64,000 bases of DNA, taken from Tubulanus polymorphus (lineage: Eukaryota > Animalia > Nemertea). Shown here piece after piece: positions 28,464-64,000 of the stretch. The notes under the pieces are model-generated. The model saw nothing but the letters and a program-made list of their open reading frames with translations, made no database searches and had not been told where the DNA came from. The stretch lies in NCBI RefSeq assembly GCF_964204645.1, contig NC_134030.1:5994778-6058777 (forward strand), given 5' to 3'. Both the position numbers and the translations under genes were made by a program. Position 1 is the first letter of the stretch. The number at the start of each line of letters is the position of its first letter.

Positions 28464-30674
28464 ACGTGATTACATAATTCGTATGGATGTATTTGTTTGC
28501 GTAAGAAAATCAGAAAATAGTTCAACGAGAGACTTTTTCTCTTAAAAGCTGCACGAAAAAATAACTGATTAACTTCAGTCAGTAAATCATATGAGATCGA
28601 ATATGATATTATGGTTTGAGGATGGTAATAAATGAAATAACAGTTCAATATCATGATTTTGATTAAATATCTATATCCGAAATTTTATTGTTTTTACATG
28701 TTCTTTCACCTGGTTTTCTTGCTTCGTGTTAATAATGCATATAATTCATTTCTCTACCGTTGTTCAATCATGAGGTATAAGAAAAAACCAGCAAATTGAT
28801 ACCTTCGAACGGTCTCATTACAAGAGGAAACTTACGACCTTTTCAAGAATAATAACAGGAAGTACCACCGCAGAATGCTGGTATGGAATGTATATATAGA
28901 AATATGACGTATATCGTCACTTTTTCTGGTGGATTCTCAGAGGGTTCTCGTCGTATTCGCAGGAAATTTTCTTGGTGGAACTTTGGTTCATGAGGTGGTA
29001 TTTTTCAAGATGAGCGAAATGGCAAAACGTATTTTGCCTGCCTACATAGGTCCTATTATTTCCAACCTAATATCATCAATTTTCAATCAACTATAATGTA
29101 GGATTAATGTATCGTGTAATCTCATACAATAGAGACAAAAATTAGAAACCGTTTTGCCCTTAACGAACGAATAGGTTTAATGGGGAGCAGTTGTATTTGG
29201 TCTTACAAAAACCGAAACTATTTTCATAAGATCAGATACATCTGCCTACACTTAACAATCGTTCTATATTAATATTTCGGGTTATCTCTATGGGTATAAG
29301 ATTATTCACGAATTATCATCGATATTCGTTGTACGTTTGTCGCTGAGTGTTTTAGTACTGACCGACCTGTTAGCAACCAACAACCAGTTAGTCAGGTAAT
29401 GTTCTTCCTTGCAGTAAGTAATATATAGATGAGTTTTGTAATGAACAATTCATCGTTTACAAGCGTTTATATTTCGGGGTATCATTGAACTGACAAGAAT
29501 ATCGGATATATTAATTCATAGATGGCGACTTCGTTGTATCTATGAACGAGGACATCTATAGCGTTGGGTTTTTTTTCTGTTGTTGGTGAATAACGATATT
29601 TTTTCACATTTGTTTCTATGATTTGTGCGATGTCAATCAACTGAGAGCACGATGGGTTTCTCGGCTGGTTGACTTTCTCAATCTATCCTGTTAGGAAGAA
29701 TCGGTCCGAGGTTAGTGTAGTCCGAGTTAGGATTGGAAAATACGTTAGGAAGTCAGAAAAAATGATTTCATGATTGTCCAAATTAGTCAAAAGTCTTAGT
29801 TTGGTCATGTACGAGGTACATACTGTAAATACAGTAGTTGTTTGGTCAGCGAGTTGGAGAACTCTGATGTATGTCCTAATTGGATTGTTCACTGTGGTTC
29901 GAACCCACGACCGCTCGGTTCTGCCTAAAATCAATTTCATCACAACGACTGCTATTTCGGGACGAGGAAAAATTGGAGATCCCTGGAAAACTGGAATTCC
30001 ACTGGTGATGCTTTTCAATCGAAAATCGAGAGCTCTCATAAAATTCATCACCATCCGGACAGGACTGGAAAAATGCCAGTGTTCTGAAGATTTTAAGCGG
30101 AAGAGATGAAATTCGTTTAACTCGTCGAAGAAAGAGTCCGAGCCATGATTCAATATCTTCCGTACGTTCTCAACATTAAAATACACATTGTTTGCTAAAA
30201 GTGGATGATTTTCTTATTCAGACTTTTAATTATTCTTGGCACTCGTGGCAGAAATTTAGAATTTTCGTATTAAAATCAATTTGACAGATGCATGTTTTGT
30301 GCGAATATATTTGCGAAAAACGTAAATGATAACGAACGAACAAATACCCGGGTAGGTCTGTGAGCAGGTGTTTTTTGTGATGAAAACCGAAACTATTTTC
30401 ATAAGATCAAATACATGTCATGCTCAACACTGAATAAACATTCAACATTTCTGGATATTTGAAGAAATTTATTGACGACAAATCATTTATTTAGCGATAT
30501 TCATCGAACGTTTGTTTGTGAGTGTTTTAGTTCTGATCGACCTGTCATTCTACAACCAGTTAGTCAGGTAATCTTCCTCCATATAATAAGTAATATATAG
30601 ATGAATACATTTGTAATGAACAATTCATTTACGCCAGTCATTTATATCAATTTCAGCTGATCATTCAAGTCAAG

Positions 30675-31662
30675 ATGAATATTGTAAACGTTTTGTCTTT
30701 ACTTGTTGGTAGGTATGAAATTCATGGAGTTACATTGGTGAATTACTATATAACTTAGAAATATCTGAATGTCATTGATTCCAGTTTTATTCGAGGGTGC
30801 TGCGGCGGCGTCAGTTCTTCTGTATGGTCCTGACAGTGCTGACACAGATGATGCTCCTAGCGCCGTCACCTGTCCTTCCAATATGAAGGTTTACATTTGT
30901 TCATGTCACGGCAATTCTTGCTGCGACGGTACACACATATCCCCAGATGGACAGACTTGTACAGCATTCAACAGCGATGGATGCCCATCGACTAAGGTAT
31001 ATGTATTTAGTTTTGGATAGTAACATGACATACTCGTTCGAGGTGGATTTAGAGGGGCTCAGGGGCCGGGCTCCCCATGTTGTTTGTTGTGTCAAGATAT
31101 CGCATGGTAATTTTGTTTCAGTAGCACCCTAGAAAATGGTCAATTTAAGGCCCTTTATACGCTTCGCACCTTTGGCGCACGTGTTCGTGTACTATAATGG
31201 TCCAATATTCTAAATTCCGGGATCCGCCCCGCTCGTTTTCCAGAAAAAAGTTAAGATTTTACCTCGAATTTCAGGCGGTAACTCGGTGTGTAACAATCGA
31301 TGCCGGCAACGATTACCGTGTCGTAAGTAGTGGATTGCAAATGCATCAACAGAGCATATCTGTTCAGTGTCCAAATGGGTTAAAACCGGAGGAATGTACA
31401 AAGAACCTGCCGTATGTAGCATTTTCACAACATTCAATTGAATTATTTCAACCTTACATTTCATTTATATATGTCTAATGCAATTTGCTGCAGCATAGAT
31501 TTATGTACTTTCAGATGGAGTCATGAGTATCGAGGCGTGCTCTCAAGGAAAAAGGCAGTAAGGAAAACTTACGGAGGGTGTTCCATCTATTCTTATGTGT
31601 GTAGGAATACTGGTTGTGAGATACAAGCGGTATGTTTTAAACACGCCCCCGAACTTTGGTAA
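30675..31662 (+). CDS. Secreted Cys-rich protein, array copy A (176 aa; two PCSK9-CTD/resistin-like modules). Coding exons 30675-30708, 30785-30996, 31275-31411, 31515-31662
   Basis: GT/AG exons totalling 531 nt in frame; signal MNIVNVLSLLVVLFEGAAA; 14 Cys; AATAAA ~30 nt after stop; non-coding exon 1 donor CAG|GTAATC ~30567. Confidence 0.85.
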
Positions 31663-32509
31663 ATCTTATGTAACATGCCAAACATGAATGAATAAAATTA
31701 TCTCTTAAAGAATGATTAGATTTTTCTATTCTTTTTAATTGGTTTTCATACGATGTAGTGGATAGCGTCAGATGATGTAATCCATCTGTCAGTTTCACGT
31801 TGTCGTGGATTTTATGATTCGAATGATGAAATTGATTCGAGGTACTGATATGTATACGAATGAGTGGGAATCATTATGACCTCAATAACATATTGTATGG
31901 ACTCGATAAATTCAGTAATTTCTCGATACCATCTGCTAATTGTAGTGAGACTGAGGCTGGTTTTCTTAGTTCATTCTATGAAACGTTATATACTGTTCAG
32001 CCTCAATCGTTTATTAACTGAATAAAATTTTGAATGTGAATTTTAATTTTAATTCTATCATTGTAACCATATTACGATATTCTCGGAGATGTCTTCCATA
32101 TTCATTTTATTACGAGGGTACTTTGCTAGGACAGTAGAGTCTCCATTCTGAAAATCATTGAACAAGAATTTTGACTATACTTATGCATAGATGGCGACGA
32201 ACAAATATTGACGTGTCCCGAATCAGCCACCATAATCGGCAGATAGTTTGTCAACAAAATGGCGACCCTTGTCTGAAAAACAAAAAATTCGCAGTTAGTC
32301 AACTCCGGCCGTAAACTGGTTACCGTACCGAGCTCTACCTTCAGTTGGCTATTTTGACTATGCAGGATATGAGCCATCCACGTTCCCCTCAGTCTCGACC
32401 CGTTAGAGTCTCGACCCGACCGTACAATAGCGCCACCGCAGTAGATCATTTTAAGTAAAACACTATAGCGAGTGTTGGATTCGCCTTTTTTCGCATGTAA
32501 AGAGTTAAA

Positions 32510-33484: not shown

Positions 33485-33703
33485 ACGATTAGTTTTAAAA
33501 AGTTAAGGGGCTTATTAAAGATATATTGAAAACGTATTTTGCTTGCCTACATAGGTCCTATTATGTCCGACCTGATATCTTCAATATTCAATCAATTTAT
33601 GAAGGAATAATTCACGTATATTGAAAACTAGGTTTGAAATTCATGGGGTTGCATTGGTGAATTACTAAATAACTTAGAAATATCGGAATGTCATTGATTC
33701 CAG

Positions 33704-34493
33704 TTTTATTCGAGGGTGCTGCGGTGGCGTCAGTTCTTCTGTATGGTCCTCACAGTGCTGACACAGATGATGCTCCTAGCACCGCCATCTGTCCTTCGAA
33801 TATGAAGGTTTACTTTTGTGCATGTGCCAATGATAGATGCTGCGACGGTACACGAATATCCCCGGATGGACAGTCTTGTACAGCGTTCAACAGTTACGGA
33901 TGCCCTTCGACTAAGGTATGTGTATTTCGGATAGAATCATAGCATTACTAGGATTTAGAGGGCTCCACGTTTGTTGCCAAGATATCGCATGGTAATTTGG
34001 TGCCAGAAAATGGTCAATTTTAGGCCCAAATACGCTTCCCCAGAATTTTAAGATCCTGGATGATCCACCCTGCTCGTTTTTCAAAAAAAAAATTAAAAAG
34101 TTACCTCGAATTTCAGGCAGTAACTCGGTGTGTAACAATCGATGCCGGCAATGATTACCGTGTCGTTATTAGTGGAGTGCGAATGCATCAAAAAAGAAAA
34201 ATACATTCGGTGTCCAGTTTGGTTTAGACCGGGTGAATGTACAAACAACCTGCCGTATGAAGCATTTTTACAACATTCAATCGCATTATTTCAACCTACA
34301 AAAATTTCAATACAATTAACTGCAGCAAAGATTTATGTATTTTCAGATGGAATCATATGTATCGAGGCACGCTCTAAAAGAATAAAATGTAACGAAGACT
34401 TACGGAGGACGTACCATCTATTCTTATGTGTGTTCGAATACTAGATGTGAGATACAAGCGGCATGTTTTAAACACGCCCCCAGACTTTGGTAA
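33704..34493 (+). pseudogene. Cys-rich array copy B, pseudogene
   Basis: ATG/signal exon missing; +1 frameshift in A-run ~34190-34201; premature TAA in last exon (..RGTL*). Confidence 0.85.
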
Positions 34494-37117
34494 ATCCTAT
34501 GTGATATGCCAATTATTAATGAATAAAATCATCTCTTAAAGAATAATTAGAGTTTTTAAATCTCTTTTTATTTATTTGTATACGATCTTGTGGATCGATA
34601 TTTTTGTAATTGCGTCAGATGATGTTATCATCCGTCAGTTTTACGTTGTCGTGGATTTTATGATTCGAATGATGAAATCAATACGAGCTACTGATATTCA
34701 TACGTATGACATCTACAAATGAGTGGGGATCATTATTCGTTTTATTACGAGGGTATCTCGAATGATGCTTTGCGTCCTGTTTGTCTGATATATTTTTTGG
34801 AACAGATCAAGATATTGGTTTATTTGTTACTTGTAATATTTATGTTTTTCTTTCAATTTCATTGCACTTCATTTTCTTGTGTTCTTTACAGGATATCCCG
34901 AAAAACTTTTTAAATTCAAATTGTAAAACAATGAAGAATGAAATTGAAAAATAAGAAAAACTAGAAATCCCTGTACGTCGTCACAGTCCCTGACCCAGTC
35001 CAACTGTTCCAGACTCAACTTCCACAGTTCCCGGTTCAGTACTTTTAGCCTATGATTATGTTTTTCACTCTTTTAACACGAGTCAACTAAACTTTGAAGG
35101 GGAAACTGGATCTATTAACTGTAGTTTTTAAACTCTATGGAATACTCAGAAAGACATTTTCCATCCGCCAAATATATATATTACAACGATCAAATTCTCT
35201 TTAGAGACTTTTGATCTAGACAGTGGCAGTAAACAAGACTTGTCCTACAGACCTCATCTTGCAATATGCATGAAAACAAATTCATGGCGTAATAATTACC
35301 TCAGAAACATCTGCAATATTTATCGAAAAAAATTATACTAACTTCTCAAAAGATACCTGGTACTTGATGTTATTTCACACTCGTAAAAACAGTGTATATA
35401 TTAAATAGACAAACTTCATAGCAACCACTCGAGAGATTGAATGATCAGTTTATTTTTGTGAGTATTTTGGAGAATAAGATAAGTGTCATTGATGTATTTA
35501 TGGGACTGTTGAGTAGCTTAATATGAATCTGGATGTGAATGAATCCAATTTGTTGATAGAAATGATCTAGCCTCAGCTTCTAATGATGATTATAATGTAG
35601 CCTAGTATATTAGTTTAGTGCATTGGTTTCAGTAGAGAAATGACCAGCAGTATTTTGTTTCAGTTATCTATTGTTTTGTTACACTATCATCGAGTGCTGC
35701 CTCCTATGGTGGTTTAAATCAGACTTCAAGGATGTAGTGATACATTTCAAATTCTCATCAGCAGTTCAAATACTGACAAATGGATTTGTCATCAGCAATA
35801 ACCTTACCCATTTTTGGTAAGCTAAGTGCCTCTAGATTGCATCAGCCCACATTTAGAACTTTAAAATATTAGTATTTATCAAACTATAGTAAAAGTAAAT
35901 TATTAACTTCATCAGGTTTCAGTTGGTTGGAGTGTTGAATTGTTTATTTCTAATTTAGATTAGTTTCGAGGGTTTAATTCTAGATTTAGAATGAAACTAT
36001 TTTTTCCTGAGTAGTTTCAGGAAATTGGGAAGTAATTCAGATTGGAATTTCCTGTTGTTGAATTTTGAGAACTCATGATCGAGAGAAGAGGACAATAACT
36101 AACTGTCCTCTCTCTTAAAAGTTGATTTTTCATTCAATTTATAAAAGCTTTAAATCTCGCATTGGATCAGAAATAATTAGCGATTGCTCATTGCTAATGT
36201 ATGAGGAGTTACTGCTTATTTAACTGTTGTGGAAGCGTAAATAGTTTACGGAAGATACAGATATGGAAGTGCGATTCGTTCAATCAGGAAGCGATTTGTA
36301 CTATTTGTAAAACTACAAATAAAACAGAGTACTGCAACTTGCGGAATTTTAGTATTCATTTTTCTCTGCGAGAAGAATGTAAAATTTGTATCGACCAAAC
36401 GCATTGAGTTCGAATTGTTTAAATTCGAGAGTTGAAAGTATTTAAACGGATTGATGTACCGAAAATTATGGTGATATTCTGGAATTGTATTTAAACTAAT
36501 TTTATTTCGGCAATGTATATGGATTGGTAAGCGACGTGGTTTGGTTTATTTCTTGTGTATTGGCTGTTGAGAATGATTTGGTAACTTTGTAATCGTGATG
36601 CAGGTGGAAAATTGGAAAGTGAATTTATTGTGTGAAGTGAAAAACTGACTGACAATATCGAATTTTGATGAAGTAGCGGTAAAGAAAACTGTGATTAATA
36701 AACATTTATTGGCCAATAAGTTATCGTTGATTGGTGTAAATTGGGAACGGACAACCAACATGCGTGTCGTATAAAATCTTTTTAGGAAAACTATCTAATA
36801 CAAATCAATAATAAGTCAGTGAGCTCACTTAATTGAATTTAGGCAATACTTGGTCCAAATAATATTGATTATATTATCTTGTAACTGTATACTCATTTTT
36901 ATTTCTCTCTGATATTTGTTCCCAAACCTACCGTGCCGATTTTGGTTTCCTTTTAATTCTGTGTAGCAAGTGGGTATTTTACAATTATATCTCTCAATCT
37001 GCCACATGTATACGATATTTGATACGAACGACAGTAACATTGATGGAGTAAAGAATTCGATTCGTTTGCCCTCCACCAAATATATATAACAACGATCAAA
37101 TGGTCTTTAGAGACTTA

Positions 37118-37202
37118 AGCCGGGCGCACACTAGGCGATTTCTCGGCGATTTTGTCGCTTGCGACGAAAATCGCTGAGAAATCGCCTAGTGTGCGCCCGG
37201 CT
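37118..37202. mobile_element. 85-bp near-perfect palindromic PIF/Harbinger (Tourist-like) MITE
   Basis: agccgggcgcacactaggcgatttctc...gagaaatcgcctagtgtgcgcccggct flanked by TTA/TTA. Confidence 0.85.
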
Positions 37203-37235
37203 TTAGGACTTGCCCTACACACATTATCATCAAGA

Positions 37236-38416: not shown

Positions 38417-39485
38417 ATGAATGTTGTAATTGTTTTGGCTTTACTTTTCGGTAGGTTTGAAATTCATTGGTTTGCATTGATGAATTACTAACTAAATAAC
38501 GTAGAAATATCTGAATGTCTTTGATTTTAGTTCTATTCGATGGTGCTGCGGCGGGGTTAATTAAAATGTTTGGTCCTTACAGTGCTAATAGAGATGATGC
38601 TCCTAGCACCGCCATGTGTCCTTTCAATAGGAAGGTTTACTCATGTAAATGTGACAACGATTGCTGCGACGGCACACATATATCCCCGTATGGGCAGTTG
38701 TGTACAGCATTCAATGGTCACGGATGTCCGTCGACTAGGGTATGTGTATTTTGGATAGTATCATGGTATACTCGTGAAGGGGCGGATTTAGAGGGAGACC
38801 GAGCTCCCTATCTTTACCAAGCAAATATTCCCCTATTTTTTGCGAATATAACATTATTGCATGGTATTTTGTTCCAGAATCACTCTAGATGCTGAGAAAC
38901 TTGTCAAATGTTTCAAATTTTCTTGGGGAGGATATGCGCCCTCTCCCTTCATAGGCTCCGCACATTTGTGTACAAATGTATATACAACAACGCTTAGGAA
39001 TTTTTGGCCCCTATTCTAAATTCCGGGATACGCTTTTGCCCGTTTTCCTGAAAAAAAAAACATTAAAATGTTACCTCGAATTTCAGGCAGTAGCTGAGTG
39101 TGTAACAATTGAAGCCGGCAATGATTACCGTGTCGTCAGTAGTGGAATGAGAATGCATACACAAAAAATATACGTTCCGTGCCCAAATGGGTTCTTGCCG
39201 GATCAATGTACGAAGAACCTACCGTATGTGACATTTCATTGAATAATTTCAACCTATTCAGATTTTATCCATGTACCATACAATTTATTGTAAAAGTACA
39301 TTCTATGATCTTTTTTTAGATGGAATCAACTGGATCAAGACCAGTTTCCATGGTACAGGAAGCACGTAACGATACTTGCACGCCCGATTTACGGCAGTAG
39401 CGGATGTAACATTAATTCCGGTATGTGTTTGAAGTATGGATGTGAGATACAAGCGGTATGTTTTAAACACTATCCCAAAATTTGA
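38417..39485 (+). CDS. Cys-rich secreted protein, array copy C (subfamily 2). Exons 38417-38450, 38531-38739, 39087-39223, 39320-39485
   Basis: Intact splice sites and frame; last exon WNQLDQDQFPWYRK..GCNINSGMCLKYGCEIQAVCFKHYPKI*. Confidence 0.85.
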
Positions 39486-44194: not shown

Positions 44195-44580
44195 ATCGTA
44201 TGTAACAACAAAACATGAATGAATGAAATCTCTTAAATTCGAATTTTTCTATTCTTTATTATTGATTTATTATTTACGATGCAGCGGATAGCGTCATGAT
44301 ATCATTCGTCAGATTTGGATTTGGATTCGACAGGTTTTGATGAAATTATGAGTGGGGATCATTGTTCATTTTATTATGAGGGTATATCTCGTCTGAGATA
44401 TGCCCAGACGTCAGACAGTGGATGTGAGGTAAAAACAAATCTTACCGCCCAAAAACAAAACTTAGCGCGCGAAATAAAAATATTCCACTTTGGCGCGCTA
44501 AAGGTGCCCACGATTTCGTTTTTGCGCGGTCGTTAAGTAGCGCGAAAAAACATATATTCAAATAAATTACGCGCGCTTCT

Positions 44581-44760: not shown

Positions 44761-45728
44761 TATACTATTGGATGGATCTATAGACATCCAAGCCGGTTTT
44801 AATGAATTTAGCTAATTTGACCGTTGGGTTTTTCAGAATATCAAGGGTATGAAAGGTATTCAAATTCAAATAGTTTTTGCGGGGTTCTATGATGTCACGC
44901 TTTCGCCATCTATTAGATTAAACAGTAACTAAAGAAATAACTAATCTATGTAATCGTATTAACTAATTTCAAAAGAAAACTAAGAAGAGCTTGAATATGC
45001 CAATAATTCAGTTCTGATCGACATGTCATTCTGCAACCGGTTAGTCAGGTAATCTTCCTCCATATGATAAGTAATAGATAGATGAATACATTTGTAATGA
45101 ACGATTCATGATTTCAGCTGATTATACAACTCAAGATGAATATTGTAACTTTCTGGTAGGTTTAAAATTCATAGGGTTGCATTGATGAATTACTAACTAA
45201 ATATCTGTTCTACAATGAGGATTACGAGCGGGTGAGATCTATACCAACAACACAAGTAAGAAGTTTACCAACACTGATTGAATAACATTGTTTTTCAATC
45301 GACTTATCAACTAATTCATGTTTCATGTAATTTCACACAATACAGTGTACAGACAAAAAAAACAAACTTCAACAGTAAATATGATTAAGCCCTTAACGAA
45401 CGAATACGTGTAATGTGAGCAGGTGTTTTTTGGACTTAAGAAAATCGAAACTACATGTATTTTCATAAGATGATACACACCTGCCAACACTTAACAATAA
45501 CGGTCCTGGGCATCTCAATTGGTATTTACTCCCGAATTAAAATATAATTTATATTCATTGTATATACGTCTGTCAGTGAGTGTTTTAGTTCTGATCGACC
45601 TGTCATTCTACAACCAGTTAGTCAGGTAATCTTCCTTCATATAATAAGTAATAGATGAAAACATTTATAATGAACGATTCATTCACGCCTGTCATTTACA
45701 TTAATTTCAGCTGATTATTCAACTCAAG

Positions 45729-49402: not shown

Positions 49403-51022
49403 CAGGAGACCGCAGAGCATATTTCGACTAAGTTATCGACATTAACTATAAATGTATGCGGCTTAAAAAGCAAAGAACATATTCCCGAGTTTCAATCGCT
49501 GATTAAATCACATGACATAATAATCCTGACCGAAACGAAGCTTAACGATACAGATGAGGCCTGGGCTAAGAACTTCTTCAACAATTTGGGGTATACTGTA
49601 TTCTTAAAAAATCGTGAGAAACTATCTTCATTCCGGTCCGGTGGCATAGCGATTGCGATAAGCAATATTTTAGCTCCTCATGTAACTATTATCAAAAGTT
49701 CTTGTAATTATGTATTATGGCTACTTGTAGACAAGCATATAATTGACAAAGATAAAAATCTACAAATAGGGGCTGTATACTTACCACCAGAAACCAGTAA
49801 ATTTGGCGGAGTAGACTGCTTTAATGCATTAAATATCGATATTCTCGAGAAATTTAATAGTACAGAATCCTTTTTATTATTATGCGGTGACTTTAACGCC
49901 TATACCGGAGCACTCTTAGACTACAACTCACCAGAAAACTACATAACTGTTGGATCAGACCTTGACAACGAGCTTCTTTTAGAAACCTATACTTGTGAAC
50001 AGTTGCTTTCCAGTTATGACATATTAAGACGCAAAACTAAAGATCTCTCGGTGAATAACTATGGGTCCCGTTTAGTAGAACTGTGTAAAAACCATAGTAT
50101 TATTATTTTGAACGGCAGGATAGCTCCCGATCGATTGACCGGTGACTATACGTGTCATAAAGGCGAAATTAAACATATAGTAGATTACATGATCGCATCC
50201 CCTCATTTGATCAGTTCTGTAAGACTGTTCCAGGTTTTAGAATTCGAAAAGCTTTTCTCTGACGTCCACAGTGGTTTAATTGCAGAGTTCAGTTTTAAGA
50301 TCGAAATTCCCGACCTGGCCTCTGTGGACACCAGTGAAAACTGTCAAGAGAAAGTTAATTGGAAGCCAGATCTGAAGGATCAATTTGTTCAGTCCTTAGA
50401 AAGGGAAATGCCTCTTCTCAATAGTATCAGTGAATGTCTCGCAAACAACACATTAAATGCAAACGAGGCCAACGACAGGCTTTGCAATATATTGTTAATC
50501 ACAGCTGGTAACGTCATGGGTAAGCGGGTTTTGAAACGTAAATCCAAACCGCGGTCAGCCGTTAAAGCCACTAACGACGTAACAGTTAGACTAGCGAGGT
50601 CTGACTATCGCCGTGCCAAACGTGCGTACCTAAGCCTGCGCACTAGAAATAATCATTTTGAAATGAATCGTGCCTTTCGTAAATATAAAAAAACTATTAA
50701 CAAATGGAAAAACGACAAAAGGCAAGAATTTAGCAGGAAAATTAGACAATTATCAAACTCTGACCCTCATACATTTTGGAAACTATTCAAAAAATCAGAT
50801 AACAATTCGTGCAAAGTTCCAAACTCCGATCTCTTCCAACATTTCAAATCTATGAATGAAAGCCCAGTTTTAAACGGAAACGAACCTCTATTAAATAACG
50901 TTGATGAATTTATAGGTAGTAACTTTGACCATGGCCCTTTGAATCAACCGTTCTCTAAGGAAGAAATCTCAAAATGTATTAAAAAGCAAAAAAAATATCA
51001 AGGCCTGTGGTATCGATGGGAT
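49403..51022 (+). pseudogene. Outer LINE ORF2, N-terminal endonuclease half
   Basis: APE motifs; ends ..KACGIDGI at the nested insertion, with an A-run frameshift ~50990. Confidence 0.85.
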
Positions 51023-51305
51023 TAAATAATAAATTAAATAATAAATTTATTTCCACAATAAAATTACAACATGTCATAAAGAGATATACAAATATGAAAT
51101 GTTTTAATATAATGTGGAGGAGATTAGATGAAGCCAATGAAGGCTTATAAAATCTCTAATCCCCTAGCATACACCGATTCACTCAACTCATACACACATG
51201 CAGTCATACACCTTCACCCAACATGCACCCACACACGTAGTCAATCACACTATCTTTCATTCACTCTTACAATCTGGTAATAGATGGCAGATACAGACAG
51301 ATTAA

Positions 51306-54230
51306 TTACAAATTCATTAGATACAATTTAAGTTTTCTTTTGAAAGTATCTATACACGACAGTTGTTTTAAACTTTTTGGCAAATTATTCCAGACAACAG
51401 GACCAGAAATTTTTACTGTGAATTGTGTTTTGTTAGTCCGAAATCTGGCAACACGAAAAGAATTCATATTTCTGGTTGAATACGAGTGTATATCAACATT
51501 CTTTTTGAAATACCGATTAAAGGAATTTGGCAATTTTGAATTATTGAATTTGAACATAAATAGACTTAATTGAAATTTTGTAATATGTCTAAATTTTAGG
51601 ATATTCAATTTTTTGAAGATAGGGTCAGTGTGTTCTAGGAAATGAGACTTATTAACTATTCTTACTGCTCTTTTTTGTAGTAGAATTAGTGGATTTAGCT
51701 TGTTTGCATAATTACTTCCCCAGATTAAATTACAATATTGTAAATGAGGATAAACAAAACTATAATAAAGGGTAATAAGGATATTTGATGGGAAATGCTT
51801 TTTTAATCTGGTTAAAATTCCAATGGAGCGTGACACTTTACTGCAGACATATTTGATATGGACATCCCAATTTAATTTGTCATCTATAAAAAGACCAAGA
51901 AAATTCGTACTATGTACACGTTTGATTAATTCTCCATTTAACCAAATGGAAGAATTAAAGTGATCTACACGACCAAAAATCATAAAGTGGCATTTCGCAA
52001 TATTTATTGAAAGTTTGTTTACTTGATACCAGATGCCAAGTTTCGCCAGTTCAGAATTTACTATGGAAACCAATTCTTTGATATTAGAGTTACTATAAAA
52101 ACAATTCGTGTCATCGGCAAAGAGGATAAAATGGAGTAATTTGGACGCATTTATGCAATCGTTAACGTATAATAAAAATAACAAAGGGCCTAGAATAGAA
52201 CCCTGAGGTACACCAATTGATACATTTAATGGAGACGATAAGGTATTGTTGAAACTTAAAACTTGACTCCTGTCAGTCAGGTAGCTTTTAAACCAATCAT
52301 GAGGAACACCTCGGATTCCGTAATAATCAAGCTTCATTAACAAAATGTCATGGTTAACGGTGTCGAATGCCTTAGACAGGTCCAAGAATAATCCAATAGT
52401 AATATTCTTATTTTCCAAGGCTTCAGAAAGATTATCAACAACCTTGGTTAGTGCCAAATCTGTTGAATGTTTTGAACGAAAGCCAAACTGGTCGGGGGTT
52501 ACAATATCCTGTTTGTTACAAAAGGAAACCAATCTGTTGTAAACTAGTTTTTCCAGAATTTTTGAGAAGCTAGGAAGCAAAGATATGGGTCGATAATTAT
52601 TTAAAGAATTAGGGGCTCCGGATTTAAACAAAGGACAAACTTTCGCAATTTTGAGTTCATTGGGAACTATTCCAGTCTGAAGACTACGGTTAAAGATATG
52701 GGATAAAGGGAACTTAATGATGTCAATCACCTGTTTTATAACAAAAATACTCAAACCATCGACACCGGCACTCTTCTTTAAGGGGAAACCCGAGACCACA
52801 TCACTTATTTCATGAGGTGAAGTCGGAAAGAGAAATAGACTTTCATTGACACGTTTATTCATATATTGATGAAAGGATTGCCCTGTATCAGGGATTTGAG
52901 TAGCAAGCCTTTCACCAATATTTGCAAAAAAATTGTTAAACTCGTTGGCGATGTTTATATTACCAGAAATAACACGTTGATCAGAAGTAAAAGAATTAGG
53001 CATTTTAGAATAAATGTTTCTACCTAAAACTGTGTTCAACAGTTTCCACTTTTCTTTCATATCATTTCCAGCAGCGAGCAATTTTTCAGAATAATAATTA
53101 GATTCGGCTTTGTTAATAAGCTTTGAAATGAGATTTTTGTACGAGTTGTATTTTGATTTTATTTTTTCTGAACGTGTTCTAATAAATTTCCTATAAAGGT
53201 TGTTTTTTGTTTTAATTGCTGCGATAATACCAGGAGTTATCCATGGTTTATGGAATGTGGGATTAATATGATTAACTGGTACCAGAGGGAAAACTTGATT
53301 GAAAACTAAAGAAACTTTTTCAATGAAAGTAGTGTAAGCAACTGAGGGATTATCAGATGAATACACTTCATTCCAGTTAATATTCATAAGTAATCTGTTG
53401 AAATTAGAAATATTGCGCTGCGAGAAAATTCTAGTTTTAAAAGGTTGTCTGTCAGACAGAGGCTGATCACCACTGCAGATAGTAAATATTGGGTAATGAT
53501 CCGAAAGGTCGGTCATAAAAATCCCAGATTTGTGAACATGTCGCAAATCGTTACAAAAAATATTGTCAATTAAGGATGTCGAGTCACAAGTTACTCGAGT
53601 TGGCTTGTCAATCAAAGGTGAAAAAGAATGAGAAAATAAAGATTCGAGAAATATTTCAGTATCTTTGTGCGTATCATATTTCATGAGATCTATATTAAAG
53701 TCCCCCACCAGGTAGCAAAGTTTGTTCTCGCGAGTAATTTCTGCCGTTAAAACTTCAAATTCATCTTGAAAAGTTGGTAATTTTCCTCCTGGAGGTCTAT
53801 ATATTACTCCAATAATAATATTGGATTTTTTATCTAAAACAATTTCGATGAATAAAGATTCGAAAGTATGATTCCTAGTTGATAAGTCTGTCCGTACTTT
53901 GAAATTGAAATTTTCCTTTAGGAAGAGAGCTACGCCGCCACCAAGTTGACCATTGGCGCGGGATTTAAAAATACTCTTGTAACCGTTAATTCTATACAAA
54001 TTGGAGTTAGAATTATTTGAATTAGTCCAAGTCTCGGTCAAACCAATGACCGAAAATTGACCATTACAACAATTCAAAAAATCAGTTAAACTGTCAAAAT
54101 TTTTGTTGACACTTCTGATGTTATGAGAAATGATGGATAGACTTCCCCGTTCAAGAGGAGAATCCTCGTCAACATTAAAGTACAAACAACTGTTGTTTGT
54201 ACAAGGTATATCAGTTACTGAGCTTTTCAT
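51306..54230 (-). CDS. LINE ORF2 (APE endonuclease + reverse transcriptase), 974 aa, intact
   Basis: HNIRS, LTETW, GGGVA, IYRPP, GDFNID, IDNIF, SDHYPI; YRPISLL, QFGFR, DLSKAFD, GVPQGSILGP, FADDT, FLG, LQKRAVR. Confidence 0.95.
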   Translation of the reverse strand: MKSSVTDIPCTNNSCLYFNVDEDSPLERGSLSIISHNIRSVNKNFDSLTDFLNCCNGQFSVIGLTETWTNSNNSNSNLYRINGYKSIFKSRANGQLGGGVALFLKENFNFKVRTDLSTRNHTFESLFIEIVLDKKSNIIIGVIYRPPGGKLPTFQDEFEVLTAEITRENKLCYLVGDFNIDLMKYDTHKDTEIFLESLFSHSFSPLIDKPTRVTCDSTSLIDNIFCNDLRHVHKSGIFMTDLSDHYPIFTICSGDQPLSDRQPFKTRIFSQRNISNFNRLLMNINWNEVYSSDNPSVAYTTFIEKVSLVFNQVFPLVPVNHINPTFHKPWITPGIIAAIKTKNNLYRKFIRTRSEKIKSKYNSYKNLISKLINKAESNYYSEKLLAAGNDMKEKWKLLNTVLGRNIYSKMPNSFTSDQRVISGNINIANEFNNFFANIGERLATQIPDTGQSFHQYMNKRVNESLFLFPTSPHEISDVVSGFPLKKSAGVDGLSIFVIKQVIDIIKFPLSHIFNRSLQTGIVPNELKIAKVCPLFKSGAPNSLNNYRPISLLPSFSKILEKLVYNRLVSFCNKQDIVTPDQFGFRSKHSTDLALTKVVDNLSEALENKNITIGLFLDLSKAFDTVNHDILLMKLDYYGIRGVPHDWFKSYLTDRSQVLSFNNTLSSPLNVSIGVPQGSILGPLLFLLYVNDCINASKLLHFILFADDTNCFYSNSNIKELVSIVNSELAKLGIWYQVNKLSINIAKCHFMIFGRVDHFNSSIWLNGELIKRVHSTNFLGLFIDDKLNWDVHIKYVCSKVSRSIGILTRLKKHFPSNILITLYYSFVYPHLQYCNLIWGSNYANKLNPLILLQKRAVRIVNKSHFLEHTDPIFKKLNILKFRHITKFQLSLFMFKFNNSKLPNSFNRYFKKNVDIHSYSTRNMNSFRVARFRTNKTQFTVKISGPVVWNNLPKSLKQLSCIDTFKRKLKLYLMNL

Positions 54231-54255
54231 ACAAATAACAAGTCATGGTGTTTGA

Positions 54256-55575
54256 CTAATATTCAACGTATTGTTTTTTCCTGGTTTTTTCTATTGAAGG
54301 TGGTGTTCCGGATAGTGATCTCTCCTTTCGTTTTGCCGAGGTCGGTGTGCAGAAAGCATCACTAGTGACGCCATCTATTGCCTCGCAAAAGTGTTTAAGC
54401 AATGCAAGCTTGCCGGTTTCACTGAGGTGAATACCACTTTTATCGGTCGGCGAATAAAAGTGGTCCAAAGCTTTACCAGACGGTTTAAGTTTCAATATAG
54501 TGTCATTATCAATAAACATGATATTCTGTTCCGCGCATAGTTTCCCGATATGGTTGTTAACTGCTATTGCAAGGCTGTTGTACTCTTTTACGTTGTTGGA
54601 GTTACCTTTTCTTGGAATGATACTAGAGAAGTGAATCTGGGCTTCATTGAAATGTTCCGTCGTTTTAGCCATGGCTAAGGACAGATTCACCACTACAGTG
54701 TCACTGTCATTTTTGTTGTTACTTATATCGTTTGTACCTAAGTGGAGAATAACGTCAGTAATCGACGATCGATCTAGAATCTGATTGTCAGCTTTATTCA
54801 GAAGCGATGAAATCTTTTCACCGCTAGCACCAGGCTGGCAAATAACCGTGCCATTCGGAAACTCGAAGTCACGGAGGTTGGAATCACCGATTACTAATAC
54901 ATTATTTGTAATAGTATTGGACAGCGGTTCGCTTGACGTTTTCTCGCAATAGTCACGCGCTTCGTTGGATATCGTGTCGCTCAGAGTCACGGTACAATCA
55001 CGAGCTTTATGCTCTGCGGCGCCACATTTGAAACACTTAAATCGTGACGGACAGTCAGCTGAGCGATGATCGCCAAGGCAATGTTGACACCCTATACCCT
55101 CACAGTACACTCTAACGCGGAATCCATCGATTGATGTGAAGTTTGGAATAACTTTATTGACTTGTTTCAATTTCAAATATCTGGTCCCAGTATATATTTG
55201 AGTGTCCCTTATCACGCCTTTTTTTACCGATCCTTCAACATAATCACCATAATTTTTAATAAAGTTGACAATGGTCAGATCCGACATCTCATACGGAGCA
55301 TCGACTATTTTCACAGACAAAAAGGTTAAATCTACATCATCCGGAGTGATTTTATTCCCTCGAAAGATTAATCCGGATTGTTTCAGAAGATCTTTACTCG
55401 TTTCATCTACTGCAGTAATTATGCAAAATTTTGACGTTATTTGAATCGCTGCTATTTTACTCACGTCACCGTCGGCACTGTCCTTTATAGCGTTAATTAC
55501 ATCTTGATGAAGAATTTTTCCGTTTACCTCATTCAGAGGAAACTTGATAGAACACTTCCTATCCAATGAACCCAT
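54256..55575 (-). CDS. LINE ORF1, 439 aa: RRM-like region, two CCHC zinc knuckles, SGNH esterase-like domain
   Basis: TGTRY motif; CQHCLGDHRSADC and CFKCGAAEHKARDC; VIGDSN..QPGA..HLGTND..DKSGIHLSETG. Confidence 0.9.
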   Translation of the reverse strand: MGSLDRKCSIKFPLNEVNGKILHQDVINAIKDSADGDVSKIAAIQITSKFCIITAVDETSKDLLKQSGLIFRGNKITPDDVDLTFLSVKIVDAPYEMSDLTIVNFIKNYGDYVEGSVKKGVIRDTQIYTGTRYLKLKQVNKVIPNFTSIDGFRVRVYCEGIGCQHCLGDHRSADCPSRFKCFKCGAAEHKARDCTVTLSDTISNEARDYCEKTSSEPLSNTITNNVLVIGDSNLRDFEFPNGTVICQPGASGEKISSLLNKADNQILDRSSITDVILHLGTNDISNNKNDSDTVVVNLSLAMAKTTEHFNEAQIHFSSIIPRKGNSNNVKEYNSLAIAVNNHIGKLCAEQNIMFIDNDTILKLKPSGKALDHFYSPTDKSGIHLSETGKLALLKHFCEAIDGVTSDAFCTPTSAKRKERSLSGTPPSIEKTRKKQYVEY

Positions 55576-55675
55576 TACTCGTTATAAATCCACAGTGAAA
55601 ACACTTGATAAATAATTTTTGTCAGGACATATACGAATGCGTGATCGCACTAGTCCGCCATCTTGAAAGCGAAAA

Positions 55676-57539
55676 GGATACCGAATGAGTTCCTCAAAAG
55701 TGCCGAAGAATCACTACTACCTTTATTAGTAAACCTTTTTAATAATGCTCTCGATACAGGCACTATTCCAGAGTCATGGCTGAAAGGCATCATTGTCCCT
55801 TTCTTTAAACAAAAAGGTAGCGAAAAGGACCCCGATAATTATAGGGGAATCACCCTTTTTAGCAATATTGGCAAACTATTCACTAGTATTATCAACGAAA
55901 GAATTACTGAGTACTTAGAAATTAACAATCTTTTGCTACAGAACCAGGCCGGTTTTAGGGAGAACCATAGCATTATGGACCACGTATTTACCCTCAAGGC
56001 TCTAGTCGACACCTTCCTAAACAACAATCAAAAACTCTATTGTATTTTCATAGATTATAAAAAAGCCTTCGACTCTATCTGGAGAAAGGCCTTGTGGCAC
56101 AAACTAATTAACAGTGGTGTCACTGGCAAAGTACTTAACGTTATACATAAAATGTATCAAGGTATCAAATCATGTGCTTTTTCCGATAATAAAATGTCAG
56201 ATTTATTTGATAGCTATTTAGGGGTAAGACAAGGTGAAAATCTGTCTCCTATATTATTTTCTATCTTTTTAAACGACCTGGAAAGCTATCTATTACAACG
56301 AAATAGTCCAACCCTAAATTTTTTCGGACCTAACAATGTGCCATGGTTCCAACTTTTAATTCTCATGTATGCAGATGACACGGTTTTATTAAGTGATTCG
56401 CCCGAGGGACTCCAAAAACTTATAGATAATCTCTGTGAATATTGCCAAGAATGGAAACTTTCAATTAATAATGACAAGACAAAGGTCATCGTCTTCTCGA
56501 AAAGAAGATTAAGAATCCTACCAGAATTTTACATTAATGGTCACAAATTAGAAATAGTTGATAAATTCAAGTACCTGGGTGTTCTCTTTTCATACACTGG
56601 ATCGTTCACACAATGTCGTAAAACTCTTTCGGAACAAGCTATGAAAGCGGTATTTTTTGTATTAAAAAAGTCAAGTGAACATTCATTAGACCTTGATCTG
56701 ACCTTAAAACTTTATGATAGTATGGTATTACCTATATTGCTGTTTGGCTGTGAAATTTGGGGATATGAGAACACACAGGTACTCGAGCGTGTTCAGCTAC
56801 AATTTTTTAAATATTTACTCAGATTGAAAAGGTCTACGTCTAGTGTATTTATTTACGGTGAGCTTGGGCGCTATCCTTTAGAGATTTATGTTAAACTGAG
56901 AATCGTTAAATTTTGGACAAAATTGATAAATCAGACTGAACATTTCTCTTCTTTTATGTACAAATATATCTATCAAACGCACCACGGTGGTCGGAGTAAC
57001 GCTTGGATTCTTAATGTTAAAAATATTTTTGTAAAAAATGGTCTCGGCCACGCTTGGGAAACTCAATCTGTACCCAGTGCTAATTATATTTATAGTATTT
57101 TGAAACAGAGACTCATGGATCAGTACGCACAAGGCTGGCACTCCAAGGTCAACGAAACACCAATTTGCTTAACCTACAAGCGTTTTAAAAACTGTTTTAA
57201 ATTCGAAGAGTACCTGACCAAATTACCCCCCAAATTACTCCGCCTAGCCTTGTGTCGATTCAGATGCTCGAACCATAAGTTACCTATTGAAATCGGTAGA
57301 TATCGCCAGATTGAGCGAAACCATAGAATTTGTCAGAAATGTCATTTGGCAGCAACTGGAGACGAATTCCATTTTCTTTTAGTATGTCCCTTTTTCAAAG
57401 CCTGAGAAACAAATTTATACCTAGTTACTTCTGGCAACATCCCAATGAAAATACCTTACATAACCTTTTCTGTTCGAGAGGTAAAACTTTGCTCAATCTG
57501 GCGATATTCATTAAAAAAGGTATCAAATCATTTACCTAA
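55676..57539 (+). pseudogene. Outer LINE ORF2, RT and C-terminal half
   Basis: RT motifs including YADD; frameshift near 57400 before the natural end. Confidence 0.88.
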
Positions 57540-58821: not shown

Positions 58822-60205
58822 ATGAATATTGAAAACGTCTTGGCTTTACTTTTTGGTAGGTTTAAAATTTATGGGTTTGCATTGATGAATTATTAACTAA
58901 AAATAGATTAAGATATTTGAATGTCTCTGATTCCAGTTTTATTCGAGGGTGCTGCGGCGGGGTCAGTTCTTCTGCATGGTCCTCACGGTGCTTGGAACGA
59001 TTCTCCTAGCAACGTCACCTGTCCTTCCAATATGAAGGTTCACATTTGTACATGTGACGACGATTTTTGCTGCGACGGTACACACATATCCGCGGACGGA
59101 CAGACTTGTACGGCGTACAACGATCCTGAATGCCCGTCGACTAAGGTATGAGTATTTTGGATAGTACCGTGGCGTACTAACTAGGATTTAGAGGGGCCCA
59201 GTGGTCGGCCTCCCCGCGTTTGTTGCCAAGATATTGCACGGTAATTTTGTGTCAGAATCATCCTAGCTGCACAGAAAATATTGTTCGTGTACTATAATGG
59301 TCCCTATCCGTAATCAGAAAAAAAGTAAAGATTTTACCTCGAATTTCAGGCAGTAACTCGATGTGTAACAATCGATGCGGACAATGATTACCGTGTCGTT
59401 AGTAGTGGAGTGCGAATGCGTCAAAAAAAGATATCTGTTCAGTGTCCAGTTGGGTTAAGACCGGAGCAATGTACAAAGTACCTGCCGTATGTAGCATTTT
59501 CACAACATTCAACTGAATTTTTTCAACCCAGGCGCGGATCCAGACTATCGCACATGCAGCACGTGCGGTAGCCGCAGTTTTCAAATGCCCTTGAAAAATG
59601 TTTGTGTCGGGAAAAAAGTAAATAAAAGGGCACACGATTTGTGCGCCATAAAGAATAATTGCCTTTCTGTTCTAGGACTAAAGCAAAATGTGAATGAAAA
59701 TAAATTGCCCAAAATCAATCTTAGGCCTTTTCCTTTGCTCAAAAGGGCACTATTCTAAATGAGACATTATTGTTGCTCCATAAATCTAATCGAAAAAGGG
59801 CAAATTTCGCCAAACATCTAAAAAAAGACGCAAGCAAATTCAATGTGAAGGCAAATCTAGTGGAATGATACCAATAAATGGCACTCAAACTCAAACTCAC
59901 TCGCTGGGCATTAATACTGGCCCTTTTCAAAGTTGGTGCCCTTTTTCCACTGTGCTGTAGTCACCGAATGGCCCTGGATATGCGCGTGCAACCTAACACT
60001 TTATCTATTTATGTCTAATACAATTTGCTGCAGCATAGATTTATGTACTTTCAGATGGAGTTATTTGTATCCAGGCACGCTCTTAAGGTATAAGGCAGGT
60101 ATAAGGAAAACTTACGGTGGGTGTTTCATCGATTCTTATTTGTGTAGGAATACTGGTTGTGAGATACAAGCGGTATGTTTTAAACACGCCCCCAATCTTT
60201 GGTAA
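58822..60205 (+). CDS. Cys-rich secreted protein, array copy F (subfamily 1; recent duplicate of D)
   Basis: MNIENVLALLF|VLFEGAAAGSVLLHGPHGAWNDSPSNVTCPSN..; AVTRCVTIDADND..CTKYLP; WSYLYPG..GCEIQAVCFKHAPNLW*. Confidence 0.85.
59529..59988. mobile_element. Non-autonomous DNA transposon, CAG-type termini, 5-bp TSD (CAACC)
   Basis: caggcgcggatccag / ctggatatgcgcgtg; AAGGGCA repeats; empty site in paralogue D (~43981). Confidence 0.8.
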
Positions 60206-61516
60206 ATCGTATGTAATAACAAAACATGAATGAATGAAATCTCTTAAATTCGATTTTTTCTATTCTTTTTTATTGATTTATTATTTACGATGCAGCGGAT
60301 AGCGTCATGATATCATTCGTCAGATTTGGATTTGGATTCGTCAGGTTTTGATGAAATTATGAGTGGGGATCATTGTTCATTTTATATGAGGGTATATCTC
60401 GTCTGAGATATGCCAAGACATCAGACAGTGGATGTGAGGTAAAAACAAATCTTACCGCCCAAGAACAAAACTTAGCGCGCGAAATAAAAATATTCCACTT
60501 TGGCGCGCTAAAGGTGCCCACGATTTCGTTTTTGCGCGGTCGTTAAGTAGCGCGAAAAACATATATTCAAATAAATTACGCGCGCTTCTACGATTACGAT
60601 TACGATTACGATTACGATTACGATTTTATTTACACTCCAACCATTTCCATGGTATATGGAGGAAAACTATTACACATTTATATACAAATATTTACAAAAC
60701 AACACTGAAGTGATTAAAATTTAGAGAATAAAAACGTAACAAAATATACATACATCAACTAATTACAATACTATGTATACTATTGGAGGGATCTATATAC
60801 ATCTAAGCCGGTCTTAATGAATTTAGCTAATTCGACCGTTGGGTTTTTCAGAATATCAAGGGTATGAAAGGTATTCAAATTCAAATAGTTTTTGCGGGGT
60901 TCTATGATGTCACCAGTTAGTCAGGTAATCTTCCTCCATATGATAAGTAATAGATAGATGAATACATTTGTAATGAACGATTCATAATTTCAGCTGATTA
61001 TACAACTCAAGATGAATATTGTAAGCGTTTTGACTTAACTTTCTGGTAGATTTGAAATTACACACAAAAACACAAGTAAGAAGTTTTACCAACACTGCAC
61101 ACAACCCTGGTTCTACCTTTCTACCTATTACTGGCCAACTTCATCATGTTGATTATTTCGTTCGAACGAAGTAATCTTTTCGTTCGAACGAAATGATTTC
61201 GTTCGAAAGAAAATATCTTTTCTAAAACAGATTTAGCCCTCTTTTGTGTTTTCATCACAATTTCGGTTTAAAAAGGCCTGATCATGACATGGGACGCGCG
61301 ACCCCTCTGGTGTAAAATTTAAATGTTAGAATATAAATGAATGTTAACGGTACAAAGCCTAATCTATTTGAAAATAAATTTTTTGTCAATATTATCTGAA
61401 GTAAAGTGAGTGGGTGATATTGGAAGAATGTACATCTTATAGTTCGAACGAAAAACCTTGCGTTCGAAGGAAATAGTCTTTGGGTTCGAACGAAAAGATT
61501 TACCGCGGTAAATCTT

Positions 61517-61628
61517 AAGCAAGGTTTACCGCGGTAGCGGGGGATGTGTCATACACTCTGGTTTTTGTTTGAAGTATGGATGTGAGATACAAGCGGCATG
61601 TTATAGATACGCCCCCAGTCTTTGGTAA
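61517..61628 (+). pseudogene. Relic last-exon fragment of an E-type Cys-rich gene (5' exon relics at ~60915-61050)
   Basis: SKVYRGSGGCVIHSGFCLKYGCEIQAACYRYAPSLW* and 3'UTR nearly identical to 46700-47070. Confidence 0.8.
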
Positions 61629-63335
61629 ATCTTATGTAACATGCCAAAATATATGAATGAATAAAATCATCTCTTAAAAAAATTATTCGACACCTTCTTT
61701 TGATGGATTTTTATACGATGTAGCGGATAGATATTTTTGTAATTACGTCAGATGGTGATATCATTCGTCAGTTTCGTGTTGGTGTGGATTTTATGATTCG
61801 AATGATGAGATTCATACGAGCTACTGATATTTATTTATACGTATGACATCTTCGAATGAGTGGAAATCATTATGACCTCCCTGAGTGACATACTGATACA
61901 GGCTCAGTAAATTCTCAATAACGGTATCTGCTAGTTGTAATGAGGCTGGGCTGTTATTTTAGTGTCATTCCATATCAATGTAACCATAATACGATATTCT
62001 CTGAGATGTATTACCTTTTCATCTTATTACAAGTGTACTTGCAATATGCATGAAAACAAATTCCTGTCGTGGGCACGAGGATACCAGGTACTGTATGTTA
62101 TTTCATACTTTCTACTATGGCCGTTCAACGATTTGGCAAGCGAGTGTAATGTTAGTTCCCGTTTTCCCCACAAGTATGATACATAGTGGTAGCACTAGAC
62201 AGTCAAGATCGCTATTTGTACTATAGGAGCAATTTGTTTCAGTCGTCAGTTCCATCATTGCTAATGCTCCACTTTATGAAATTAATCTATTGATTAAGAC
62301 TCTAAAGCCACTATTTAATACAAATAATTCCAATCTAGTTCATCCGATTTTTGATTTTGGTTAAAAAGATAAGTATTTATTCTTGTGTAGCCTACATAGG
62401 GCAGGTCTGTCCATATCGATGTATATTTTCTTTTCTATGAAATAAATTAACTTGATCTCGAAGGTAATCGTGATTATTTGACAAATCATGATGAACAGTT
62501 ACAATTTCTCCACCACTCTAAAACGAGTCCATGCTGCTACATACAAACCATGTGATGTGTTTTATTCTTCAACTGAATTAGACAGTGACCAGTCTTTGAA
62601 AAATTATTATCCTAATATATATTCTACGTGTTTTCCAATGCGTCTAATAATTCATTTGGTAAAGGCCTGCACCCGGCTTTACCAAATCACTGGTTGAGGA
62701 TTAAAACACGACAGTTGTTGGACTAATTATTTTCAGACAGCTTTAAGATTTCTTCTGAAGAAGGTCTAATTTGACCTTGGTGATTATTATCCATAATTAA
62801 CGACAAGTTCAGTGTAAAAAAGCTCGATCCGAATACGGGACGTTTTTCACTTGAGACCTGTCAATACAACAGTACAGGTGTATGTGTTCTGCCGAAAAAC
62901 GAAACGATTATCCAAATATGAAATTGACATCAGTCTATTGTTGAGATCGATGATTATTTCCGCCTTATATATGCAGAGTATTATACATCTAAAACTTGAA
63001 TACATCATCAGAACTCCGATCGGTGTAGTTTTAATTGTGGTCAACTGGTGATTCGGTTTCGTAGACTGTAAATTCAAGTAAGTGTAAAATCGTATAAAGC
63101 AAAACTCCAAACACGGCCTATGTTTAGCACCACAGTATTATCCAACGATCATTTTTGAGATTGCTTAAACGGCAAAATAGTTGCATTTTTTTCATAATTA
63201 AATTACGTTGAATCATGTCTCTGATTGTGAAAGTCTAGACTTGTAACCTTTCAAACCAATACGTTTTGTGTTGTACCAAACCGAAATAGCTAGACTTTAA
63301 GTGTATGTTAATCGCGTCTTATCTTTCAGCACAAG

Positions 63336-63668
63336 ATGAGTATTGGAAACGTTTTGGTTCTAATTTTCGGTAGGTTCTTTAGTCACGATTAAGTCGATAA
63401 ATTCCAACCACTTCTAATTGCTGAGAATGTCTGAATGTCTTTGATTCTTATAGTTTTATTCGAGGGTGCTGCGGCGGCGTCAGTTGTTCTGTTTGGTCCT
63501 AACAGTGCTGACACAGATGATGCTCCTAGCGCCGTCATCTGTCCTTCCAATATGAAGGTATTTAGTTGTGCATGTTACGATGATTCTTGCTGCGACGGTA
63601 CACACATATCCCCAGATGGACAGACTTGTACGGCATTCAAAAAACGCTTCGGATGCCGGTCAACAAAG
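63336..63668 (+). CDS. Cys-rich secreted protein, array copy H, partial (later exons beyond window). Exons 63336-63369, 63454-63668
   Basis: MSIGNVLVLIF|VLFEGAAAASVVLFGPNSADTDDAPSAVICPSNMKVFSCACYDDSCCDG..CTAFKKRFGCRSTK. Confidence 0.8.
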
Positions 63669-64000
63669 GTACGTGTAAGAAATTTCAAAATTAAATTATT
63701 TCTTAGTACAAAAATTTCGAGGTAAAATTTAAGTCCTAACTATCGATAGTGTCTTGAAGTGGTTGAATGGATTTTCCCTAATGTGGCTGGCTCACACTTT
63801 AAAATATAAAGTGCGACGGATTTTTTTCAATCACATCAATTTTATGTTGATCAGGTTGATTATCAAAATGTTTTATTTCTAAATGCACCGATTGTTTTAC
63901 GTGCTAATGGTGACAATAATTATTATCGAGTTGTTTGGTCATCGAAGTTATCGCAGTGTTTGTGACGCATTTCTGAATTTTTGATTTTATACATACTTTG

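Follow-up and report, generated by a model that had tools for sequence, protein, structure and literature searches.

We analyzed a 64,000 nt stretch of the genome of the ribbon worm Tubulanus polymorphus (contig NC_134030.1, positions 5,994,778 to 6,058,777 of the forward strand; hereafter the window), in which a tandem array of related genes extends from 29.2 to 64 kb. In total, the array comprises nine paralogous genes, of which eight are intact (copies A, C, D, E, F, H, I and J; the last two lie just past the window end). We are highly confident that these genes encode a secreted, protease-free protein consisting of two modules with the fold of the PCSK9 tail and of resistin. The explanation as a whole, i.e. 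an array of such proteins acting as effectors directed to the outside, appears to us probable. The PCSK9 tail is medically important, yet little is settled about where it came from and what it does in general. Its sole recognised structural relative is, to our knowledge, resistin.

Each intact copy followed the same plan of a 5' exon and four coding exons with canonical GT..AG introns. The product has a size of approximately 176 aa with a mature part of 155-162 aa. Exactly 14 cysteines were present in every intact copy and were divided between the two modules as 8 + 6 (8 of 8 copies), as read by an earlier model-made description of the sequence (here referred to as the first-pass annotation), whose motif strings for both modules also agreed with our alignments. 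Since the N-terminus is hydrophobic, a signal peptide is predicted. The whole coding sequence is accounted for by this predicted signal peptide and the two modules behind it, and the Pfam scan gave no match to peptidase S8 in the exon pieces or in copy I; the proteins were thus rightly called protease-free. With two to five histidines they are not His-rich. Copy I corresponds to the RefSeq entry XP_074652969.1 of T. polymorphus ("uncharacterized protein LOC141907268"), to which the translations of its exons 2-4 are 100% identical. This database protein was used for all full-length tests, and the copies of the window were searched exon by exon.

The resemblance to the PCSK9 C-terminal domain and resistin had been proposed in the first-pass annotation. 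It was borne out by the intermediates found with an exon-2 profile, by hhalign, by Foldseek and VIA-align using a model of copy I, and by the architecture of two protease-free modules. Searched exhaustively with HMMER, the exon-2 profile returned 27 proteins among 1.84 billion, and five of these matches (E 5e-18 to 2e-5) reach the Pfam gathering scores of PCSK9_C1 and/or PCSK9_C3. Besides copy I, two classes of proteins were matched. The first contains multi-module proteins from marine metagenomes and transcriptomes, which score above the gathering scores of PCSK9_C1 and PCSK9_C3 and often carry three repeats; some of these relatives also bear PAN, WSC, somatomedin-B or metalloprotease domains. 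With one three-module relative as query, plain phmmer matched PCSK9 chains of the PDB (1.4e-9). The second class consists of two-module proteins of the bryozoan Watersipora subatra and the hemichordate Saccoglossus kowalevskii.

For hhalign, the two modules of the family alignment were separated and each was set against 32 aligned canonical modules. The probability of the match was 98.7% (E 1.8e-16) for module 1 and 73% (E 3e-5) for module 2. All six canonical cysteines are aligned in module 1, which contains one extra cysteine pair that is specific to this array. Module 2 has six cysteines, three of them at canonical positions. It keeps the start CP.G..(4 residues)C...PW and the final strand ..A.C; the cysteines of C.C and CDG are lost, others are gained and an insert is present. 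In the comparison with Pfam PCSK9_C1, C2, C3 and resistin that had been proposed earlier, homology to the PCSK9 modules was found by way of Pfam-positive intermediates and by hhalign, but there was no direct match. Neither the exon translations nor copy I reached the gathering score of PF18459, PF18464 or PF18463, and Pfam Resistin gave no match with copy I or the exon pieces (the best value, 0.02, was on a relative). The full family alignment used as a profile against the PDB sequences yielded chance EVH1 matches alone (E about 1). A word-indexed protein search with the open frame of copy C gave no match, and the same type of search with the family alignment returned nothing beyond the rows already aligned.

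The model of copy I obtained with AlphaFold2 and the family alignment had a mean predicted local distance difference test (pLDDT) score of 79, with values above 90 in the mature domain except for residues ~156-175. In a Foldseek search of the PDB with this model, all 28 highest-ranked entries listed were PCSK9 (E down to 3e-6), and VIA-align superimposed the model on PCSK9 443-605, i.e. modules M1 and M2, with Z 15.8 and a root mean square deviation of 2.4 Å over 143 residues. Resistin was aligned on module 2 with Z 7.7, and the APC-beta prism of apicomplexan perforin-like proteins with Z 5.4-5.7. As modelled, the protein thus shows both the jelly-roll module and the neighbour packing of the PCSK9 tail. 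The two modules are predicted to pack as M1 and M2 of PCSK9 and to form two thirds of a double-layered beta-prism, the third place being empty. The 14 cysteines would lock this scaffold.

Two leads were obtained from the ESM Atlas. The search with copy I pointed to a mollusc-rich cluster with PCSK9_C annotations. The Atlas model of copy I also resembled secreted proteins of Actinomycetota of ~290 aa, with template modelling scores of 0.73-0.74 when normalised by the query and 0.42-0.44 by the bacterial row. Judged from these models, bacteria may hold prisms of the same module.

Compared with the C-terminal domain of PCSK9 (also termed V-domain or Cys-His-rich domain; Pfam PCSK9_C1, C2, C3), the array proteins share in the model the module fold and the packing of two modules. 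They also share the motif ..C P.G ... C.C ... CDG ... C.A.N ... A.A.C, to which they are linked by the Pfam-positive intermediates. However, PCSK9 carries a prodomain, a subtilisin domain and a three-module tail, whereas the array proteins have two modules and an incomplete prism. They also differ from the PCSK9 tail in not being His-rich, in the extra cysteine pair of module 1 and in the altered cysteines and the variable insert of module 2. Resistin and the RELM proteins (FIZZ, PF06954) are likewise small, secreted and cysteine-rich with a jelly-roll head module, but resistin has a single module with a 10-Cys head, a different cysteine spacing and an N-terminal coiled coil by which trimers and hexamers are formed; the model of copy I has no helical stalk. 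APC-beta of TgPLP1 and PvPLP1 belongs with the PCSK9 V-domain to one subgroup of double-layered beta-prisms with layer-linking disulfides, and it is the membrane-binding module of a secreted effector (PMC6294395). Here the structural match was weak, the three subdomains sit on a MACPF pore-forming domain and no sequence similarity was detected.

In full-text literature searches, stand-alone PCSK9-tail-like proteins of invertebrates were nowhere described, and the ribbon-worm toxin papers searched mentioned neither PCSK9 nor resistin. This concurs with the first-pass annotation, in which no described family of this architecture had been recognised. The array combines a known module with a stand-alone architecture that had not been described, and the expansion is specific to the lineage. 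With 31-95 aa and a helical or knottin structure, the known nemertean toxins (cytotoxin A-III or parborlysin, neurotoxin B and the nemertides) are short peptides that differ from the beta-rich protein of ~155 aa found here.

For the layout of the array, the region of copy A (30300-31800) served as blastn query against the window and the exon peptides of copy A as tblastn queries. Further copies on the same strand started near 33.6, 38.2, 41.7, 45.4, 58.5 and 63.3 kb. At least seven copies had been claimed; blastn yielded seven full or near-full copies and four relics, in the same places as in the first-pass annotation. With tblastn, exons 2-4 were recovered in each of the copies A to F, exon 2 in copy H and a lone exon 4 in the relic at 61539-61625. 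Within the window, copies A, C, D, E and F are intact, B is a pseudogene and H crosses the window edge. The following features, all on the plus strand, were assigned (e1 to e4, coding exons 1 to 4):

29185-29453, plus strand: 5'-region relic of a copy, upstream edge of the array (blastn, 74% identity to copy A 30362-30628)
ends 30567, rejoins at 30657, plus strand: predicted 5' exon of copy A (donor CAG/GTAATC at 30567/30568, acceptor TTTCAG/)
30675-30708, plus strand: exon 1 of copy A, ATG and 11 codons of the predicted signal peptide, phase 1 (donor GTAGGT)
30785-30996, plus strand: exon 2 of copy A, end of the predicted signal peptide and most of module 1, 7 Cys
31275-31411, plus strand: exon 3 of copy A, last strand of module 1 with the 8th Cys and first half of module 2 (CP.G...C)
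31515-31662, plus strand: exon 4 of copy A, variable loop, then the second half of module 2 with 4 Cys; stop TAA (AATAAA 28 nt downstream)
33629-34646, plus strand: copy B, pseudogene (exon 2 at 33706-33915 open)
38417-39485, plus strand: copy C, intact (e1 38417-38450, e2 38531-38739, e3 39087-39223, e4 39320-39485; longer exon 4)
42083-44194, plus strand: copy D, intact (e1 42083-42116, e2 42196-42407, e3 43808-43944, e4 44047-44194)
45007-45195, plus strand: 5'-region relic of a copy, located between D and E (blastn)
45729-46810, plus strand: copy E, intact (e1 45729-45762, e2 45843-46051, e3 46406-46542, e4 46639-46810)
58822-60205, plus strand: copy F, intact (e1 58822-58855, e2 58937-59145, e3 59350-59486, e4 60055-60205)
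60912-61730, plus strand: partly deleted copy without exons 2 and 3 (5'-region relic 60912-61059; exon-4 relic 61539-61625 and 3' flank, blastn match 61577-61730)
63336-64000, plus strand: copy H (e1 63336-63369, e2 63454-63668; exons 3 and 4 past the edge)

The assignment of B as a pseudogene and of H as partial agreed with the earlier description. Copy B has other sequence in place of exon 1 and a frame break in its third exon (near 34195-34204); its exon 4 contains a stop and lacks two of the cysteine positions. Copy H is completed at ~64056-64451 in window-extended numbering, and exons 3 and 4 are open in H as well as in I and J. When the exon-2 profile was run against the whole assembly, nine exon-2 copies were located in the array (C6:6,025,564-6,064,876), two of them past the window edge.

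The junctions of the coding exons of copy A were also present in C, D, E, F and H. Exon 1 reads ATG...G/GTAGGT and all acceptors end in ..AG. The 5' exon with the donor CAG/GTAATC and the acceptor TTTCAG/CTGAT was kept in A, C, D, E and F, in agreement with the RefSeq model of copy I. This model consists of five exons, namely the 5' exon and the four coding exons called here, and the proposed five-exon gene was confirmed by it and by the conserved splice sites. Aligned on XP_074652969.1, the exon pieces of the window lay end to end with 0 overlap or gap at the joins. The alignment is, at the sequence level, a check of the exon joins that is independent of the reading of splice sites and has no bearing on the expression of the window copies. 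For copy I itself, located ~1.8 kb past the window end, RefSeq uses an ATG of the 5' exon as the start codon and thereby adds 28 residues ahead of the predicted signal peptide. Translation more likely begins at the second ATG, the start that all copies have in common.

Some copies deviate in their introns and 3' flanks. Intron 2 of copy D (42408-43807) is 1400 nt long vs 204-354 nt in the other copies, and intron 3 of copy F (59487-60054) is 568 nt long vs ~100 nt; both were probably enlarged by insertions. The signal AATAAA follows 28-31 nt past the stop in copies A, C and E. Copies D and F have no canonical AATAAA within 120 nt of the stop (44195-44315 and 60206-60326, respectively), and the homologous site reads AATGAA.

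The family is not restricted to the array. With the exon-2 profile, approximately 22 further divergent matches were found on other contigs of the assembly, several of them in tandem clusters. Altogether, the T. polymorphus genome holds ~30 loci of the family, with several tandem clusters of the same exon plan. Clusters of divergent paralogs were located at C8:12,141,500-12,151,500, at C1:31.26-31.27 Mb and at C10:3.46-3.79 Mb. The 10 kb of the C8 cluster that were inspected showed the same split into three exons, one for module 1 and one for each half of module 2, and contained no fusion to PAN/apple.

In other phyla, XP_067927881.1 and XP_067941100.1 of W. subatra and XP_006818615.2 of S. kowalevskii share the succession of a canonical and then a derived module. 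As in the array proteins, the derived module has CP.G..M.SC...PW and the final ..AVC. These relatives differ by an identity of only ~29% and by the lack of the extra cysteine pair of module 1, and the hemichordate protein bears further modules. In databases the bryozoan and hemichordate proteins are named solely "uncharacterized protein", and all names across the family are "uncharacterized" or "hypothetical". Stand-alone secreted proteins built from two PCSK9-tail modules thus occur in a ribbon worm as well as in a bryozoan and a hemichordate. One lineage multiplied the gene into dozens of fast-changing copies, which provides an evolutionary context for human PCSK9 and resistin.

Comparison of the eight intact copies showed that the strands and all cysteines are constant and that the variation lies in loops. 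Four regions vary, namely the N-terminal stretch, the two loops that lie between C.C and CC and ahead of the seventh cysteine, and the first ~25 residues of exon 4. The latter also carry insertions and deletions and correspond to the low-confidence part of the AlphaFold model. The ratio of non-synonymous to synonymous substitutions (dN/dS), determined pairwise with Nei-Gojobori counts summed exon by exon, ranged from 0.45 to 1.10, with 0.45-0.74 for the older pairs and 0.79, 0.88 and 1.10 for A/D, A/F and D/F, respectively. Over 628 aligned non-coding sites taken from the upstream and downstream flanks and from introns 1 and 3, copies D and F differed by K ~0.027 substitutions per site, vs 0.104 in exons 2-4 (Fisher p 2e-7). 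The same trend was observed for C and E, with ~0.10 in non-coding sites vs 0.22 in exons.

The proteins would be secreted and would act outside the cell as rigid binding modules. Specificity would then sit in the loops that differ between the copies, above all in the poorly ordered insert with which exon 4 begins (~25 residues). The tandem expansion, the loop-focused change with exons outrunning introns and the habits of the relatives of the fold suggest that the target is an external one and not a housekeeping partner. The PCSK9 tail attaches to proteins on the cell surface. In mucosal defence, RELM-beta and resistin kill bacteria and permeabilise their membranes (PMC13647132, PMC8253364), and APC-beta binds membranes (PMC6294395). 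Furthermore, ribbon worms are known for toxic mucus and proboscis secretions (PMC6410017). Because ribbon worms secrete such material and the relatives bind membranes or surface molecules, we favour a role as binding effectors, either in defence or of a venom-like kind. By analogy this role is plausible, although it falls somewhat short of being probable in its own right. Its most likely setting would be the epidermal mucus or the proboscis secretion, with an antimicrobial or toxin-like activity. For ribbon-worm biology the array would then represent a candidate new secreted defence or venom family that homology-based toxin surveys would miss. With its natural variants of a single rigid scaffold, it also lends itself to the question of what the fold binds.

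Several results weigh against an array of outside-directed effectors. None of the RNA runs contained this stretch, and no RNA or protein support was found for any window copy; the reads that could be mapped were DNA contigs, which agreed with the assembly, showed chimeric joins between paralogs and no spliced joints, and are uninformative on expression. The Pfam scan found no family match in the exon pieces (E up to 10), in read-through ORFs or in full-length copy I (E up to 0.1). The net charge of 0 to +8 is not clearly cationic as in antimicrobial proteins. The function is derived by analogy with distant relatives, and a common fold is no proof of a common function. By pairwise counts, mean dN/dS is mostly below 1, and the synonymous sites of D and F are raised as well. 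Of 50 differences between the exons of D and F, 24 had both states in other copies of the array, 19 were unique to F and 6 to D. Since both states of about half of the differences occur elsewhere, paralog exchange explains part of the exon excess. Gene conversion within the array as its sole cause was rejected, as 25 of the 50 differences are unique to one copy. Given this split of 24 common vs 25 unique differences, both paralog exchange and new substitutions contributed.

Three other explanations have to be considered. The window copies might be silent or decaying, with copy I as the only working gene. Copy I is indeed the only copy found in public protein sets, which also counts against an effector array, and one pseudogene, four relics and the lack of AATAAA within 120 nt of the stop in D and F point in the same direction. 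However, five window copies keep their frames, splice sites, starts, predicted signal peptides and 14 cysteines despite 9-33% non-synonymous divergence. In the absence of selection such retention would be very unlikely, and we give this explanation the least credence of all. A function as internal signals, either as a resistin-like set of hormones or cytokines or as ligands for the worm's own surface receptors, would parallel mammalian resistin and the PCSK9 tail. These share the fold and act on host receptors, and the two-module unit is old, as it also occurs in a bryozoan and a hemichordate, in keeping with an internal role that has been conserved. On the other hand, nine tandem copies with loop-focused change and with exons faster than introns would be unusual for a hormone with a fixed receptor, and the coiled-coil stalk of resistin is absent. 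We consider an internal signal unlikely.

We would likewise expect only with low probability that the genes encode gamete-recognition proteins or adhesive or structural proteins of mucus or matrix, changing fast by sexual conflict or relaxed constraint. Reproductive proteins, too, typically belong to secreted tandem families that evolve fast, and dN/dS near 1 in the young pairs would also be expected under relaxed constraint. Plain decay is contradicted by the strict conservation of the 14 cysteines and the strands in eight copies and by dN/dS of 0.45-0.74 in the older pairs, and nothing in this analysis ties the genes to gonads. The preferred interpretation as secreted effectors could be extended further. 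The two-module unit might be an ancient free-standing bilaterian family, with the PCSK9 tail and resistin as its sole studied members. In Tubulanus it would have been recruited, via repeated tandem duplication and accelerated loop change, as a new class of mucus or venom effectors binding target membranes or surface molecules, perhaps joining other chains to complete the three-module prism. This extended scenario is speculative and, taken in full, rather doubtful.

Copies E and F are separated by a block of retroelements of the long interspersed nuclear element (LINE) type of ~9 kb (48548-57405). On the minus strand it contained an open reading frame (ORF) of 974 aa with endonuclease and reverse-transcriptase domains (51306-54230) and, upstream of it, an ORF with a zinc knuckle and a GDSL-esterase-like domain (54256-55575). 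A second reverse-transcriptase ORF (55663-57405) and an endonuclease-like ORF (49586-51025) were located on the plus strand. In the region 5' of the array, an open frame with a match to the rhodopsin family of seven-transmembrane receptors (14083-15027, minus strand) and an exon-sized frame with an immunoglobulin-domain match (21067-21537, minus strand) were found, both unrelated to the array.

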